This document shows positions 43,285 to 50,387 of a stretch of 64,000 nt of DNA, in pieces. Origin of the DNA: Tetramitus jugosus (lineage: Eukaryota; Protista; Heterolobosea). The DNA lies in assembly GCA_937625935.1 (NCBI GenBank), contig OW569375.1, positions 401,874-465,873 on the forward strand, read 5' to 3'. A program made the position numbers and the translations under genes. Position 1 is the stretch's first letter; the number at the start of each line of letters is the position of its first letter. The notes beneath the pieces are model-generated. The model saw only the letters and a list, made by a program, of their open reading frames with translations. It made no database searches and was not told where the DNA came from.

Positions 43285-44700
43285 TCACTCTAGGTAGATG
43301 AAGTACCTTGCTCTCCTTCCAGCGTTGTCAGAGTATACATATGACTTTCTGCCAGATTTAGACAAGTACTTGTCATACAGTTCTTTGGTTTTAATACCAT
43401 TGATCTGTTTCTCATCAGCAATAAGGATAAAATGACTGTTTTTGCCCAATTGCATATTGTACTTCCGATCTGGATGTAGAAACTGCAGCATTTCATTGAC
43501 TAACTTTGTCACAATGAACATGAACTGGTAATGTGTAAATCTTCGCATGATATATCTCGCTCTACCAAATAGACCTTCCGACCTATTCGTCAGAAATAGT
43601 CTAGTGCTGAAGATCATTACCTTATTGTTCATGATATGGTTCATCTGATAAGTTATCAGCTTATTGATTCCAGTGACATTCATCTTCAACTCTTCGTACC
43701 CTTGATCTGTAATGCCAAATGATCCATCCAAGTACTTGGTTAGATCTCTCATTTCTTCGACAATGAGTAATGCTTGCTCCATACTGTCTTTCTGATCATA
43801 TCCATTCCCTCCTGCACAATGTAACCTGTGCAAGTGATCTTTGGTGTAAAACTACTGCACCGAAATGTAAGATGTTCAAAACTGTGTCTCTTAATATACA
43901 GGGAGAACTTCAGAGAGAAATTAGTACCCTTCTGTGGATCAACCAATTCTATACGATATCCACCCTCTAACTTATCATCGAAGTATGCAGACAGCCGTCT
44001 TTTGTGATACGAGCTTCGAAAAATGGATCTGGACGATTCCCTTTCAAGATCAGAAGATTAAAGTCTTCTCCCACATCAGATATCTCAACTGATAAAGTTA
44101 AGACCTGGGTGATGTATCTTGCTGTTGTACTGATCCGTATTACTGCAATGGCATTAACACTGATCTATGATGTTTCGCGTCTGAAAGTAATACATTACTA
44201 AACGTCTTAGAGAGATGACACACACAGCTTACTCCAGATATATCGAACTCTTGAGTTACAGTTCTCACTACTTCTGCATTAGCTCCATCTGAATTGATCG
44301 CCTGTACGTTGGTACTGTTCTCTCTGCATACATTCATTGTATCACGAAGCGCTTACACATGCAGCAACAATACCAAAGCTGTTCGAAGAATGGCAAAGCA
44401 GAACTACAGTTGCTTTTCTTGCCAAGTGTTCCAGTGCCTTCAAATTAGTGAAGATCCGTTCCTGCAGTACATCATTCGAACTGAGTGCAGCGAGCTTAAA
44501 TTGAACTCTATACTCGTGTCACTCCGGGGTGATGTGTCACATGACCATTACTATTGTATGAGCCACAACTGCGTCCAGAGATCGTAATGGGCAGATGAGG
44601 CATAAGGATGATACTTGCAGGATCCAGAGTCAAGAATTCCAAGGCAGAATTCATCCTTCTAATTGCAATGAGCATCACCATTCCGGAGATTTCAAGTTCC
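43285..44700 (-). mobile_element. Degenerate P-element-like DDE transposase relic
   Basis: Fragments in changing frames, in P/THAP9 order: SLDAVV (first D), AINSDGANA (second D), CVCHLSKTFSNVLL (x-x-x-H-L-x-K-x-x-x-N motif), FGITDQGYEELKMNV, STRLFLTNRSEGLFGRAR (catalytic E helix); several stops. No TIRs identified. Confidence 0.55.
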
Positions 44701-44759
44701 TTTCGAGGCTTTGAAAAACACATACTATCAAAACATAAGAGCTCAATATATTCATGCCA

Positions 44760-46218
44760 CACCTTGTAAAGCCATATCATTACAAAAGGAGTGGCTGGGT
44801 GTGAATATACCCACGACTCAGTACGACCCGACCGTCTACAGCTATGATTCCATGGTGGAAGCTCTCGTCTCTCTCAACATCTCTCACGTCAGAGTACCTG
44901 TTCAATGGTGGTGGTTAGAACCTGTGAATGGTACCATGTCTCAATTGTATTTGGATCGACTAGATTCCATTATGCAGAAATTTTCTGTGGCACATGTCAA
45001 GACCTTGTTCTTCTTTGTTGGATCACCTGTATGGCTCACGACAGATCCGTTGAAACAAGTGGATACATATCCACCTGCGGATTATAACTTGTACTATGAT
45101 AGAGTGAAATTTCTGATTAATCGATATGAGTCACTGGGACTTGATTCGATTCAAATTTGGAATGAGGTAAACATTCCTGGTTTCTGGAGACCTAAAGAAG
45201 ACCCTGCAGCCTACTCTGAACTACTAAGAGGCTCATACAACATGGTCAAGTCCATGAATCAGACACATGTTAAAGTTGTGATGGCAGGTATGGCCTACTT
45301 CAGCGAAATGCCCAACTACAACTACGATTGGATGCTCAGAGTACTTAGAGACAATGGAAGTTTTAGTTATTGTGATGCTGTTGCATATCATCCATATTAT
45401 TTCACTCCAGAAGGTAATGATCCAAACGATCTGTTCTCCTTTGAAGACAAGGCCACCTTGGTCAACTCCAATTTGAATGGGAAGAGTGTATGGGCAACAG
45501 AATGGGGCTGGTCAACCTACACTACCAATATGGAGGAACAACCTTTCATTACCGAGTTGCAGCAAGGCGATTATATCTTGAAGAGAATGACTATGCTCAT
45601 GCACTTGTGTTTTGATAGAGTGTACCAATTCACTCTACATGATCTATCAAATGGTGTTGGTGGTAGAGACGAGTTTTATGGAATGTTGAGAGCAACTCAA
45701 GATGGTTCCATCGTGGGCAAGCCTTCCTACTTGCCATGCGAAACTTTTTATCCTTTATCAGCAATAGTAGTGATAACACTATTTTGGAGCCTGTGGATCC
45801 CATTAAACCAGAAGTCGAACCTGGTAACATGCACTCTCTTACAGTTAAAGATTCAAGTTCTGGTTCTATTTTCTGGTTCTATTGGGCCAATAGAGAACTC
45901 AATGTAACTATTAAGCTGAACACAACAATGATATTAGGCTCCTACACTGACACACCACAAATTCAGATGACTTTTTATGAACCGTTGAATGGAACCAGTG
46001 TTATTCAAGTATTGAATACGACCACTTCGAAGCGTGAAGTGTCCGTGGAAGTGAAGGTGTGGACAGGACTGAGAATAGTCAAAATTTCTCAAGCTCAGCA
46101 GAATCAAGCTCAACAGAGTGAAGTCCAGCAGAGTGAAGTTTCGCAAGCGGCCCTTAGTACCACACAACACCATTTTATTCTTGCCGTGTTGCTGTGTTTA
46201 TTCATTTTCTTGTACTAG
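44760..46218 (+). pseudogene. PslG-like GH39/GH5-clan glycoside hydrolase with GPI-type tail; 5'-truncated and frameshifted
   Basis: LGVN, VGSP, YPP.D, QIWNEVNIPGFWRPKEDP, AGMAYFSEMP, YHPY..PEGN, WATEWGWSTY, QGDYILKRM, FTLHDL. A 1-nt loss at ~45731 separates KPSY from AMRNFL; hydrophobic C-terminus HFILAVLLCLFIFLY; no ATG or signal peptide before the domain. Confidence 0.8.
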
Positions 46219-46349
46219 AAGAATGTTGGCTCGTACAAAGTGGCAGGAACTTCAATAAATCTCAAGATTGCTCAAGTTCATCCCGTACCAATCTTTTTTA
46301 TGGGTGTGTGTTGTTGGCGTTAATTTTTGAATTGGAAACAAAACAAACA

Positions 46350-49300
46350 ATGACTTGGAGCATCTATGATTGTTGCAATCTAGATCACGTTCATTTCAAG
46401 CCACAGAACGAGAATGTCACACTGCTGAGCAGAGTTGCCCTTTTTGGTGGTCTGACCAAACAAGATAGATGCAAATTACAATTGAATGAACGAAGCCAGT
46501 ATTCGAGGAACTTTGATCGAGGTGTTCACAAGGTATCTGATGATACCATTTCTCAAAGGATACGACAAGAAGTCATGGAAAACAAGAATGAAAATTTCAA
46601 GTTGGGCTTTTTTGCACTAAGTGGTGCGAAGGACAGTGGTAGTCAACCGATTCCCAGAGATGTGCTTCACTTGATCATGTCTTTTATTCCAGCATTTCCC
46701 TATTATTTCGTGCTGAAGTCAGTGTGTCGTCAGTGGTTCCACGAATTTCAAGAACATATTTTTGCCAAAGTTGAACATTTGAGTCTGGTGGATGATGGAA
46801 AACCAAAGTACTATTTCAGAAGAGAAGATGATGGTCATGAAATATTAGTTCAGTTTAAACCCATTGGTTTGATTGGAACTCAAGGTCGGATGAGTGATTT
46901 TTGTTATCCGATGCTCAATCCTGACAAAACTCATCTGTTTGAGTTCTTGGCTCAATCATTTCCCAATGTGAAACATCTTCGATTGGGTTTGGGGTCTATT
47001 GATTGCACCCATTTCAAACAATGTGTGCCAGCAATGTTTCCAAAGTTGACACAGCTGGAAACTTTGGATATTATAGATACTGTGAATTATTACCAGAGGG
47101 GTCCATTTTGGGTGATGCAGAAAGATATATTGGAGATGATTGCTCGTTCATTGCCAAGTTCAACCAAGAACCTAAACTTTATTGGAGTAACCTTGTTAAG
47201 AATGTCAGAGTTGGAGATGCTCAAGATGTTTTCGAAGAAAGGAAGACAATCAATCTCAGAATCGTTACATCCATCATCGATGGTGGAGCAGAATCCATCT
47301 GTGGATATTCAGAACTTGTCTTTGTCTTACTCGTTCTTGGATGGCTTGAATATCGATGATTGCAGATCTCTCAAGGAAATGTACTCAGACTGTGAGATGT
47401 CAGTGGTGGATTCGAGATCTCACAGTGATTCAGCATCTTCGCTTCCAGTTTTCTCCTATGTTGAGTATTTGAATTACATGTCAAAGAAGGAGGGAATTGT
47501 CTTGTCAGTCATGAAAGATGTACAGAGACGTTTGATGAGCGACACTTCTGAAATTATTGAAACCGTGATTGATATTGCTGTGCAAGAACACTCTTACTTT
47601 CAACCTCTTCTCTCTCTTCCAGCAGCGAAAACAGGGATTCAGATCGAATCACGAACCAAACTAGATGCAGAGTTTATGCTCAGGACCGAGAAAGAGTTTT
47701 TACCCAAGATGCTGGAGTTGCTCGCTGATCCAAGTCGAATGAAATACTCTGAATTGGTCTTCAACATTGATAGTACCTTTATTTATGAAGAGAAGCCAAG
47801 AACCCTCCTCAACGGTTTGATATCAAACTGCTACAGTGAACAAGATTTTAACATGATCAAGACAATCATTGAGACTTACAAACCTTCATTGGCTGTCAAT
47901 GGTGTTAATAATTATCTTTACGAGACGTCCTTCAGTTCACTCACTCCGGTTCGAACTGAATTGATGAAATATTTGGTGTGTTTGAAGCCTGACTTGATCA
48001 ACTTGGGAGATTCAGAAGGAATCATCAATGATAGTCAAAAAGATCTTCCAATCATTCAGTTGATTCTCTCCCGGTGGTACCCTGCCATAGAATGTTTGGA
48101 AGAAATCAAATTCTTGGTATCAGCAGGAGCGTTGCTCACTCAAGTAGACAAACATGGAAACAATATTCTTCACTCTGCCTGTGAGTGTATGGAGATTGAG
48201 TTAGTGAAATATTTGTCGTTAGTTTGTCCTGAGAGTTTTATGTTCGAAAGAAACAAGCGGAACCAAACTCCTCTGGAATTACTGTTTACTCGTCCCTTGC
48301 GTGCTTCTCTTCGCCCACAGTTTCTGAACGAAGTTGTACATTTACCTTGCTTCAAGGATCAACCACTCAAAGATTACAAGACATCATGTGGCAATCTCCT
48401 TCATGCTGCCCTGTACACTCCACATCTCGAGACCATCCAATGGTTCCTTCAGAATGGATTTGATGCAAATGCATTGAATGAGAATGGAGAAAACGCATTT
48501 TTCCGTTGCATTTCAAGAAAGGAGTCAGGTTATGGACCTGGATTTGTGGATGAAATTGCTGTTGAACTGATCAAAGCAGGAGCACAAATTGAACTTGAGA
48601 ACAAGGAGCGAAATACCGTTGTTACATTTGGACTTCAAAACAACAAGAACTACCGAATGGTTAAATTCCTTGTCCAGACAGCAGGATCACTTTCGTCGAA
48701 ACTATGGTCAACTCTCTTGGCTCCAAGAATGAAACATGGATTGAACGCTCTGCATTATTTTGTCAAGAAAATGGTTGAGATCATGGACTCCTACTCAGAG
48801 ATCAACAGAGATAAAGCATGGTCTCAACATAGCGATTGTCCTATTGCGAAACATTGTGCACTCCTTTGTCTTGAACATCACCCTGAAATGCTCTATGAGC
48901 GTTCTGAACCATCAGATGAACAGGATCTGAAATATATTTGTGGTGTGAGTCCACTTCAAATGTTGCTTGAAGCCCGTCATGGATTGTATTTATTGAGTGA
49001 ATTATCAATCAAGTTGAGTGATATTGCCAATCAACCAGTTTTTAAGAGCAAGAATACTGCTGATGATATGGCTGCTCCCATTCCTGTCATGTATCTCGCA
49101 TCGGAAGTGGCGATAGATATTTCAATGTTTGATGAATTGATGAAACTTACTGACAATGTTCTTGTCAGGGATGAAGCACGAGAAACAAGACCCAATCTTT
49201 TGCACATTGCAGCAGAAAGAAGTGTTTCTTTATGTGAGTGTATCATAAAGCATTGGAAAGAAAGGTATCCTGATCCAGGAGAGTTGTCACAATTGATTAA

Positions 49301-49412
49301 TCAATCACTTGAGAATGATGGAAGAAGATATGCTGCTACAATTGCCTCGAGTTCAGGTTTTTACGATATAGTTCGCATGCTCTGTTCATTGATGGAGGCT
49401 GTAGACAGTTGA
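46350..49412 (+). CDS. F-box + LRR-like + ankyrin-repeat protein
   Basis: IPRDVLHLIMSFIP...VLKSVCRQW (F-box); FPNVKHLRL / LTQLETLDI (LRR-like); DKHGNNILHSAC, GNLLHAAL..FLQNGFDAN, NLLHIAA (ankyrin). Confidence 0.85.
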   Translation: MTWSIYDCCNLDHVHFKPQNENVTLLSRVALFGGLTKQDRCKLQLNERSQYSRNFDRGVHKVSDDTISQRIRQEVMENKNENFKLGFFALSGAKDSGSQPIPRDVLHLIMSFIPAFPYYFVLKSVCRQWFHEFQEHIFAKVEHLSLVDDGKPKYYFRREDDGHEILVQFKPIGLIGTQGRMSDFCYPMLNPDKTHLFEFLAQSFPNVKHLRLGLGSIDCTHFKQCVPAMFPKLTQLETLDIIDTVNYYQRGPFWVMQKDILEMIARSLPSSTKNLNFIGVTLLRMSELEMLKMFSKKGRQSISESLHPSSMVEQNPSVDIQNLSLSYSFLDGLNIDDCRSLKEMYSDCEMSVVDSRSHSDSASSLPVFSYVEYLNYMSKKEGIVLSVMKDVQRRLMSDTSEIIETVIDIAVQEHSYFQPLLSLPAAKTGIQIESRTKLDAEFMLRTEKEFLPKMLELLADPSRMKYSELVFNIDSTFIYEEKPRTLLNGLISNCYSEQDFNMIKTIIETYKPSLAVNGVNNYLYETSFSSLTPVRTELMKYLVCLKPDLINLGDSEGIINDSQKDLPIIQLILSRWYPAIECLEEIKFLVSAGALLTQVDKHGNNILHSACECMEIELVKYLSLVCPESFMFERNKRNQTPLELLFTRPLRASLRPQFLNEVVHLPCFKDQPLKDYKTSCGNLLHAALYTPHLETIQWFLQNGFDANALNENGENAFFRCISRKESGYGPGFVDEIAVELIKAGAQIELENKERNTVVTFGLQNNKNYRMVKFLVQTAGSLSSKLWSTLLAPRMKHGLNALHYFVKKMVEIMDSYSEINRDKAWSQHSDCPIAKHCALLCLEHHPEMLYERSEPSDEQDLKYICGVSPLQMLLEARHGLYLLSELSIKLSDIANQPVFKSKNTADDMAAPIPVMYLASEVAIDISMFDELMKLTDNVLVRDEARETRPNLLHIAAERSVSLCECIIKHWKERYPDPGELSQLINQSLENDGRRYAATIASSSGFYDIVRMLCSLMEAVDS

Positions 49413-49621
49413 TGAGGCGAGTGTGCAATCTCTTGGCAATGTTGTCAAACGTTCTTGTAAATCTATCTATCCTTTGCAACACATCATCCTTGTTAACTGA
49501 TTTGTTAAAAAGAAACATATTGTCTCTGGCTTTGAATTGCCTGTAGTCCATATGATCTGCTCTCACAATCGAAAACACAATTTGATCAATTCGAAAGCTT
49601 ACACAACAAAACAAGATCAAA

Positions 49622-50387
49622 ATGAGTGAAACACAAAGAGTTTGGTTAATCACAGGTACTTCTTCTGGATTCGGTAGAGAATTCGTTCGCACCATCCTTA
49701 ATCGTGGTGACAAGGTTATTGCTACTGCCAGAGACTTAAGCAAAATTCAAGATTTGGCCGACGCAGGAGCTCACACTCTGCGTCTTGACGTAACAAGTGG
49801 TCTTCCTGCTCTGACAACCATTATGGAAGAAGCCATCAAGGTTTATGGACGTATTGATGTTCTGATCAATAATGCTGCTCTTGTCGTACATGGCACCATT
49901 GAAGATGTTTCACCTGAAGAAACATTTAAACAATTTGATACAATTGTGTTTGGTTTGTTGAACACGACGAGAGCTGTATTGCCACATATGCGTGCTCGTA
50001 AAAGTGGTACAATTGTGATGATTGGATCAATTGGAGGATTTAGAGGCACATCTCGGTATAAAGGTATTGTTGGTTGAACCGGGTTATTTTAGAACTTCGC
50101 TGTTAGCTCCACAGAACATGTCATCTGCGGAGAATAGACTTGCTGATTATGATCAAGTTTACAAGGCTGTGAATCTTGAATCTGTGCACTCAAAGCAGCC
50201 AGGTGATCCTAAAAAACTGGCAGAAAGAGTGGTTGACGTAGTGACTGGAACTGGTGCAGAGGGAAGAGAGATGCCCTTCAGATTACCATTGGGTACCGAT
50301 GCGTTTTCATATGTACTGGACAAGTGTGACGAGGTGAAAAAACAGATTGAACCGTGGGAAGATGTCATTAAACGCACAGATTTCTAA
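49622..50387 (+). pseudogene. Short-chain dehydrogenase/reductase lacking the catalytic YxxxK segment
   Basis: WLITGTSSGFG, LDVT, IDVLINNA, GSIGG, then a jump by frameshift directly to LGIKVLLVEPGYFRT; the ~25-30 aa with YxxxK are absent. Confidence 0.8.

Follow-up and report, generated by a model that had tools for sequence, protein, structure and literature searches.

A decayed subtelomeric duplicate of a PslG-family glycoside hydrolase gene in the amoeba Tetramitus jugosus, with an intact paralog at another chromosome end

The window analysed here is a 64-kb stretch (C32:401874-465873) of the genome assembly of Tetramitus jugosus, which comprises 26.35 Mb in 56 contigs. Its GC content is flat at 40% throughout, and a long GGGTTT telomere array closes it. 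The element under study (window 44749-46218, + strand) is a remnant related to PslG, a glycoside hydrolase of Pseudomonas aeruginosa that degrades biofilm polysaccharide; the telomeric repeats start ~17 kb beyond it, on a contig of >465 kb. Its sequence marks it as the decayed duplicate of a gene for a glycoside hydrolase of the PslG family (CAZy GH39-type). Two adjoining + strand frames (44711-45907 and 45736-46218) are jointly read as one enzyme, and the broken protein was searched as these two separate pieces, not across the break. The first reading frame of the remnant (44749-45730, + strand) corresponds to residues 38-364 of an intact protein encoded elsewhere in the genome (100% amino acid identity) and contains most of a predicted (beta/alpha)8 catalytic domain. 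The second (45733-46092, + strand, within the open frame 45736-46218) carries the end of this domain and a beta-sandwich (about 45784-46092), both placed by AlphaFold2 and Foldseek. A stalk (46093-46140) and a hydrophobic tail (46141-46218) follow.

Intact signal-peptide-bearing paralogs had been anticipated in the initial annotation, and one exists. A six-frame search of the whole assembly returned exactly one further copy (C1:686868-687821), within a 537-aa open frame of contig C1; the intact gene occupies C1:686730-688325 and encodes 531 aa from its ATG. C1 (699,783 bp) also has GGGTTT repeats at its end, ~12 kb from the gene, and both copies are thus subtelomeric, in the same orientation. 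They belong to a duplicated block of ~5.5 kb shared by two chromosome ends (window 44538-50233, + strand), which also contains an ankyrin-repeat gene. When this interval was compared by blastn with the last 33 kb of C1, it matched C1 686512-692105 with 99.24% identity over 4755 bp; the flanking pieces of the match reach 96-97% identity, and an extra piece lies at C1 696732-696916. The window copy is a dead copy from a recent subtelomeric duplication.

Membership of the PslG family is supported by sequence and by predicted fold. Among all Protein Data Bank (PDB) sequences, phmmer with window 44777-45730 returned PslG (5bx9 and 4zn2) at E 1.8e-51 over 303 residues; the next matches, GH39 xylosidases, were weak (E 0.003) and lay around the NE motif. 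The homology had first been proposed from five motifs of PslG. The first four are visible in the phmmer alignment, and the fifth (KPVYLALQRFL) lies beyond its end. The AlphaFold2 model of the intact protein, built from a 60-sequence alignment, has a mean predicted local distance difference test score (pLDDT) of 88.5. It consists of a helix for the signal sequence (residues 10-28), a (beta/alpha)8 barrel, a beta-sandwich (383-485), a disordered segment (492-509) and a terminal helix (508-530). Its best PDB match in Foldseek is PslG 5bx9, with a TM score of 0.93 and a root-mean-square deviation of 2.3 Å across both domains (~450 alignment columns against a PslG chain of ~414 residues); the next GH39 structure reaches a TM score of 0.58. 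Pfam gives no backing to the assignment: up to E 10, neither frame piece matched any family except for a chance hit to NUMOD1. Precomputed matches to PF01229, PF00150 or PF02449 exist for several bacterial members of the family; the amoeba pieces have no such match.

The active site is preserved. Residues are given here in PslG numbering (position in chain 5bx9_A + 26), and the roles of the -1 subsite and of the sugar-contacting residues follow a 2025 study, in which PslG is an endo-beta-glucanase and the contacts are listed from a structure with a bound Psl-like pentasaccharide (PMC11912335). According to the 5bx9_A alignment, the predicted acid/base glutamate of the NE motif (E165; E176 in the intact protein) is encoded by GAG at 45164-45166 (+ strand), and the predicted nucleophile of the TEWGW motif (E276; E288 in the intact protein) by GAA at 45500-45502 (+ strand), so that the catalytic pair is retained, as first claimed. 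The E165 column is invariant in 54/54 bacterial sequences and in the 5/5 eukaryotic sequences (of 6) that cover it; the E276 column is likewise invariant in the alignments. More generally, the whole -1 site (N164, E165, E276, F319, R331 and D332) is intact in the 60-sequence alignment, and N164, F319, R331 and D332 are shared by the amoeba protein and every Naegleria sequence covering these columns. Because the -1 site is fully retained, a retaining beta-glycosidase mechanism is well supported for the predicted enzyme.

The window copy has lost its 5′ end. At the deletion junction (44746-44748, + strand, placed by alignment of both loci and blastn coordinates), 3 bases are found where the intact copy has 121 bp. 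The lost segment (C1 686719-686839) carries the ATG at 686730 and codons 1-37, which include the signal peptide. A missing 5′ end had been noted initially, and read-derived sequence bears it out. The check relied on Logan contigs, which collapse near-identical copies, and 2601 letters of sequence were queried in four compared runs (X1, X3, X8 and X10), of which X1 and X3 are labelled as the source organism. The junction is crossed with 0 differences by X1 record 5 (44641-44778) and by X3 record 14 (44641-44777), and a loose end of X1 at 44749 displays the other copy's form, with the signal peptide. Because contigs of both runs span the junction without difference, the 5′ loss is real. With start codon and signal peptide gone, the window copy therefore cannot yield a secreted enzyme, and on the 5′ loss alone it is a pseudogene.

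The frameshift that the initial annotation placed at ~45731 is less secure. The assembly does have TT at 45731-45732 (+ strand), a 1-bp frame-shifting deletion relative to the TTT of the intact copy (TAC TTG at 45728-45733, against TAC TTT G in the C1 paralog); this form is known from the assembly only. Against it, no contig covering 45730 in X1, X3, X8 or X10 has the TT form, and all carry the extra T. The silence of X1 says little, because X1 displays the C1 form at every variable site, the pattern that bubble collapsing would give. X3 has both alleles at several single-nucleotide polymorphism sites, but only a T-bearing contig at 45730. Thus, the frameshift may be an assembly error, or a variant dropped during contig building. 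Were it an error, a working window copy that uses an alternative start might be imagined, the more so as the two coding regions, indels apart, differ at few bases; it is nevertheless highly improbable, since two runs confirm that the ATG and signal peptide are gone and the earliest in-frame ATG of the open frame 44711-45907 is codon 46, 45 codons in and amid the first strands of the barrel, which would leave a truncated, cytosolic protein. Apart from a few substitutions between the coding regions, the window copy further differs from C1 by a stalk that is one 15-bp unit shorter. X3 holds both assembled forms together with a third set of variants (e.g. at 44833, 44845, 45625, 45780 and 45828; region 44809-46098). 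This third set matches environmental RNA contigs and hints at a further copy or a mixed sample.

Two RNA-library contigs point to transcription of the intact form. A soil-metatranscriptome contig of 1737 nt includes the signal-peptide 5′ end and stops ~110 nt past the stop codon, and a contig of 1220 nt from an oligo-dT library ends 18 nt past the stop. Both are bounded by the gene and are ~97-98% identical to it, which hints that the intact form may be transcribed in nature by close relatives. A metagenome fragment from the Joint Genome Institute (JGI; P0001) is 98% identical and also reads intact. Stalk length is variable: the window copy, the C1 copy, the JGI fragment and the RNA contigs differ in their number of 15-bp units.

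The intact protein carries several features expected of the eukaryotic secretory pathway, and the NxS/T sequons, C-terminal stalk and hydrophobic tail reported initially are all present in the sequence. Its N-terminus has a basic stretch and then a hydrophobic core of 18 residues (Kyte-Doolittle mean of up to 2.4 over 15 residues), and the full-length Naegleria orthologs have a signal peptide too. The intact protein has ten sequons where shuffling predicts 5.2 (p 0.03), and the five bacterial relatives counted have 0-2. The stalk (46093-46140, + strand) is rich in Gln, Ser and Glu and is built of 15-bp repeat units encoding Q-S-E-V-type pentapeptides, as revealed by the 15-bp gap relative to C1; both length forms are found in read contigs, and pLDDT falls below 50 at residues 492-509. 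The tail (46141-46218, + strand) resembles an attachment signal for glycosylphosphatidylinositol (GPI): an S-x-A triplet, 8 polar residues and 14 hydrophobic ones (mean Kyte-Doolittle 3.1) precede a TAG stop. This layout is found in 6/6 eukaryotic homologs and in no bacterial member. The eukaryotic tails start with a polar low-complexity stalk and a small triplet (S-x-A; in N. gruberi S-S-G), from which a brief polar spacer leads to 14-20 hydrophobic residues that continue up to the last codon. Parts of the GPI transamidase are encoded in the genome, namely Gpi16/PIG-T (E 3e-128, its family confirmed by protein search), Gaa1 (E 5e-48) and three loci for C13 peptidases.

GPI anchoring of the amoeba protein is thus plausible on these sequence features. 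What tempers it is that the signal peptide and the C-terminal signal were judged by inspection and Kyte-Doolittle hydropathy. The C-terminal stretch could instead be a plain membrane-spanning anchor, or the N-terminal one a signal anchor, with no GPI lipid added; the AlphaFold2 helix at residues 508-530 and the N-terminal hydrophobic segment that holds bacterial PslG homologs would suit such an arrangement. It is rather unlikely, since the hydrophobic run reaches the last residue without a cytosolic or basic tail, small residues and a short polar spacer precede it in all six eukaryotic sequences, and transamidase subunits are at hand.

The gene is not confined to its source organism: three Naegleria species share it. 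A word-index search with the intact protein gave as best named matches proteins of N. lovaniensis (571 aa, 43% identity, E 1e-114) and N. gruberi (570 aa, 42%). Separated from these by a gap, the next matches were bacterial proteins of 430-470 aa with 30-38% identity, named in their source as beta-xylosidase, PslG or cellulase-family proteins. An exhaustive search of 1.84 billion cluster representatives found 4911 relatives, 24 of them at E <=1e-30. Only five of the 4911 clusters are of eukaryotic type: that of the source organism, that of N. gruberi, one of N. lovaniensis and N. fowleri (including XP_044567135), and two that are metagenomic. Of the latter, one is taken as eukaryotic because calreticulin adjoins it on its contig. 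Databases already list the Naegleria proteins, but under names that say little (hypothetical, predicted, or generic glycoside-hydrolase domain). Among the papers searched on Naegleria with PslG, with GH39, or with horizontal gene transfer, glycoside hydrolase and biofilm, nothing relevant was found, and none connects these proteins with PslG. What is new here is a eukaryotic, secretory and probably lipid-anchored form of PslG, restricted to heterolobosean amoebae.

The Naegleria genes have a history of their own. In N. lovaniensis (L016:6001-7803), a single 87-nt intron, read from a three-frame translation with no spliced model joined, lies in the catalytic domain directly before the conserved R-D pair; it is absent at that place from the gene studied here, and the N. 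fowleri copy has a gap there. The N. lovaniensis and N. fowleri genes have common neighbours, with ABC transporter genes on one side and AOX and a leucine-rich-repeat gene on the other. The intron, the gap at the same place and the common neighbours together argue for long residence in eukaryotes. Relative to the N. lovaniensis protein, the N. fowleri ortholog (GCA_008403515.1, VFQX01000009.1; L015:2766-4306) is split into four segments by the intron gap and two changes of frame, which lie near residues 114 and 341; N. fowleri gene calls made separately on ENA and on Logan contigs are interrupted at identical positions. In N. fowleri the gene thus appears to be in decay, and in N. lovaniensis it is whole.

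Outside eukaryotes, the nearest relatives are bacterial. A scan of bacterial and archaeal genomes (one genome per species; best 80 of 264 relative-encoding stretches) kept relatives that are all from bacteria (Pseudomonas, Dyella, Aquabacterium, Chromobacterium and other Gamma- and Betaproteobacteria), with identities of <=37%. In a maximum-likelihood tree of 73 sequences and 442 columns (LG+C20+F+G4 by posterior mean site frequency), the seven eukaryotic rows form one clade (100/100). This clade lies within a bacterial subclade, adjoined by P0096 and P0099 (98/93) and then by P0098 (100/95), and the Pseudomonas PslG group stands elsewhere in the tree, distant from it. The best tree that holds the 61 ingroup bacterial rows together is rejected by the approximately unbiased (AU) test (log-likelihood difference 40.7, p 0.0002). 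Tree and test together support the proposal of a bacterium-derived gene in a eukaryotic chromosome. The expectation of a nested position among PslG proteins stands in part: the eukaryotic clade does nest among bacterial PslG-like proteins, but its nearest relatives are uncultured lineages and not Pseudomonas PslG. Some features of the analysis count against a transfer: the group submitted to the AU test was chosen with the tree already in view, the branch leading to the eukaryotes is long (1.0 changes/site) and their composition skewed, and the sister sequences are unnamed metagenome proteins, of which only P0239, from the P0098 cluster, is placed on a clearly bacterial contig.

The sequence comparisons indicate a single bacterial transfer into an ancestor of the source amoeba and Naegleria, from a donor related to the Pseudomonas PslG lineage and not from that lineage itself. 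Vertical inheritance within eukaryotes was rejected on the five eukaryotic-type clusters among 4911 relatives, the nested position in the tree and the AU test; Pseudomonas as donor was rejected on the distance of its clade and the uncultured nature of the sister bacteria. The rival explanation, that the region is bacterial contamination or an assembly mis-join, has in its favour that the nearest non-eukaryotic relatives of the protein are all bacterial. Its probability is nonetheless negligible, and it was ruled out by the uniform GC over the 64 kb, the position amid eukaryotic genes on a telomere-ended contig, the second copy on another such contig, the orthologs in three Naegleria genomes (one with a spliceosomal intron) and the low identity to any bacterium.

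Bacterial gene context bears on function. On the contig of P0239, the neighbours include LpxB, a Ser/Thr kinase, a GH38 alpha-mannosidase and a rhamnosidase-like gene. Among bacterial relatives of known context, the closest (L012:5257-12405, SRR10663363) has as neighbours a GH38 alpha-mannosidase, a rhamnosidase-like gene and an AraC regulator. They form a catabolic set and not a synthesis operon, and the set matches the Psl sugars mannose and rhamnose. Beside the two copies of the source amoeba, no psl-type synthesis genes were seen; each is a lone gene adjoining the ankyrin-repeat gene. This neighbour (window 46194-49412, 1072 aa, with Pfam ankyrin matches), directly downstream of the PslG-like remnant, belongs to the duplicated block and is open in the homologous region of both copies.

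In its distal sugar contacts, the amoeba protein departs from PslG. Of the residues that contact sugars at -2 to -5 in PslG (H81, D83, R84, Y114, D133 and Q134; PMC11912335), only D133 is kept. The others are changed in the 60-sequence alignment (H81 to Q, D83 to W, R84 to W, Y114 to F and Q134 to T). His81, which contacts the -3 sugar in PslG (PMC11912335), is His in 54/54 bacterial and three Naegleria sequences and Gln in both copies studied here; this Gln corresponds to residue 89 of the intact protein (codon at window about 44900-44902), and the next two residues are Trp-Trp. Position 114 is F in the 5/5 eukaryotic sequences that cover it, and D83, R84 and Q134 vary among bacterial members too. 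Taken as a sequence-based prediction, the enzyme very likely cuts a beta-linked polysaccharide; with distal sugar contacts that differ from those of PslG, it need not act on Psl. Psl as the polymer cut, and an action on biofilm, are conjecture.

A substrate of the amoeba's own making deserves thought at this point. PslG of P. aeruginosa reportedly belongs to the apparatus of Psl biosynthesis, where its target is a self-made polymer (PMC9075953, PMC6813494). By analogy with that role, the amoeba enzyme might act on the cyst wall, the surface coat, or stored or secreted beta-glucan rather than on the biofilm of prey, and distal subsites that have diverged from the Psl-binding pattern would agree with this. 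Such a role is a serious alternative, if the less likely one; the lack of psl-type synthesis genes seen beside either copy and the catabolic surroundings of the closest bacterial relative speak against it, as does a gene dispensable enough to decay both in N. fowleri and in the window.

Collectively, the data are probably best explained by a PslG-family surface hydrolase of bacterial derivation, intact on C1 and decayed in the window. An ancestor of the source amoeba and Naegleria would have taken up a PslG-family gene from bacteria, and the working gene would now be the 531-aa copy on C1. Its product, we infer, would enter the secretory pathway, be N-glycosylated and be tethered, most likely by a GPI anchor, to the exterior side of the plasma membrane, equivalent to the phagosome lumen. 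There it may cleave a beta-linked heteropolysaccharide by a retaining mechanism, most plausibly a bacterial exopolysaccharide met in grazing. Duplication of the 5.5-kb subtelomeric block would then have given the window copy, from which the start codon and signal peptide subsequently disappeared and in which the frame may also have been broken. An enzyme at the cell surface or in the phagosome lumen fits the digestion of prey matrix. The more specific scenario, in which a heterolobosean surface endo-glycanase, lipid-anchored and of bacterial origin, cuts Psl-like exopolysaccharide on contact during biofilm grazing, is speculative and unlikely; if true, a predator employs a matrix-release enzyme family of its own prey.

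Little is understood of how amoebae breach the polysaccharide matrix protecting bacteria in biofilms, and a PslG-type enzyme with an intact active site and cell-surface signals, present in at least two heterolobosean genera, provides a concrete candidate gene. PslG is itself studied as an anti-biofilm agent, and changes at the distal subsites may give natural variants a specificity for other polysaccharides. That the gene apparently decays in N. fowleri and is retained in its non-pathogenic sister offers a small lead on differences in lifestyle.

The closest characterized counterpart is PslG of P. aeruginosa (5bx9, 4zn2 and 9g17). The amoeba protein shares with it the barrel and beta-sandwich fold, at ~31% identity over ~410 residues, and both catalytic glutamates together with all -1 residues. 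It differs in that its gene is nuclear and lone, whereas PslG is encoded in the psl operon; in its signal peptide, 10 sequons, disordered stalk and GPI-signal-like tail; in the change of 5/6 distal sugar contacts; and in its grouping with uncultured bacterial relatives rather than with the Pseudomonas clade. The Naegleria proteins (N. lovaniensis C9374_003856, the 570-aa protein of N. gruberi and N. fowleri FDP41_011352) are more alike, with 41-43% identity, the same five-part layout and a place in the same clade. Their genes are chromosome-internal, syntenic and intron-containing, whereas those described here are intronless, subtelomeric and duplicated; His81 is kept there and replaced by Gln here, and the two frame changes are peculiar to the N. 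fowleri copy. In a broader perspective, eukaryotes have domesticated antibacterial genes of bacteria, for example those of GH25 muramidases and Tae/Dae amidases, which cut peptidoglycan. The amoeba gene resembles these cases as a bacterial hydrolase taken up by a eukaryote and possibly turned against bacteria; unlike them, its predicted product would cut exopolysaccharide.

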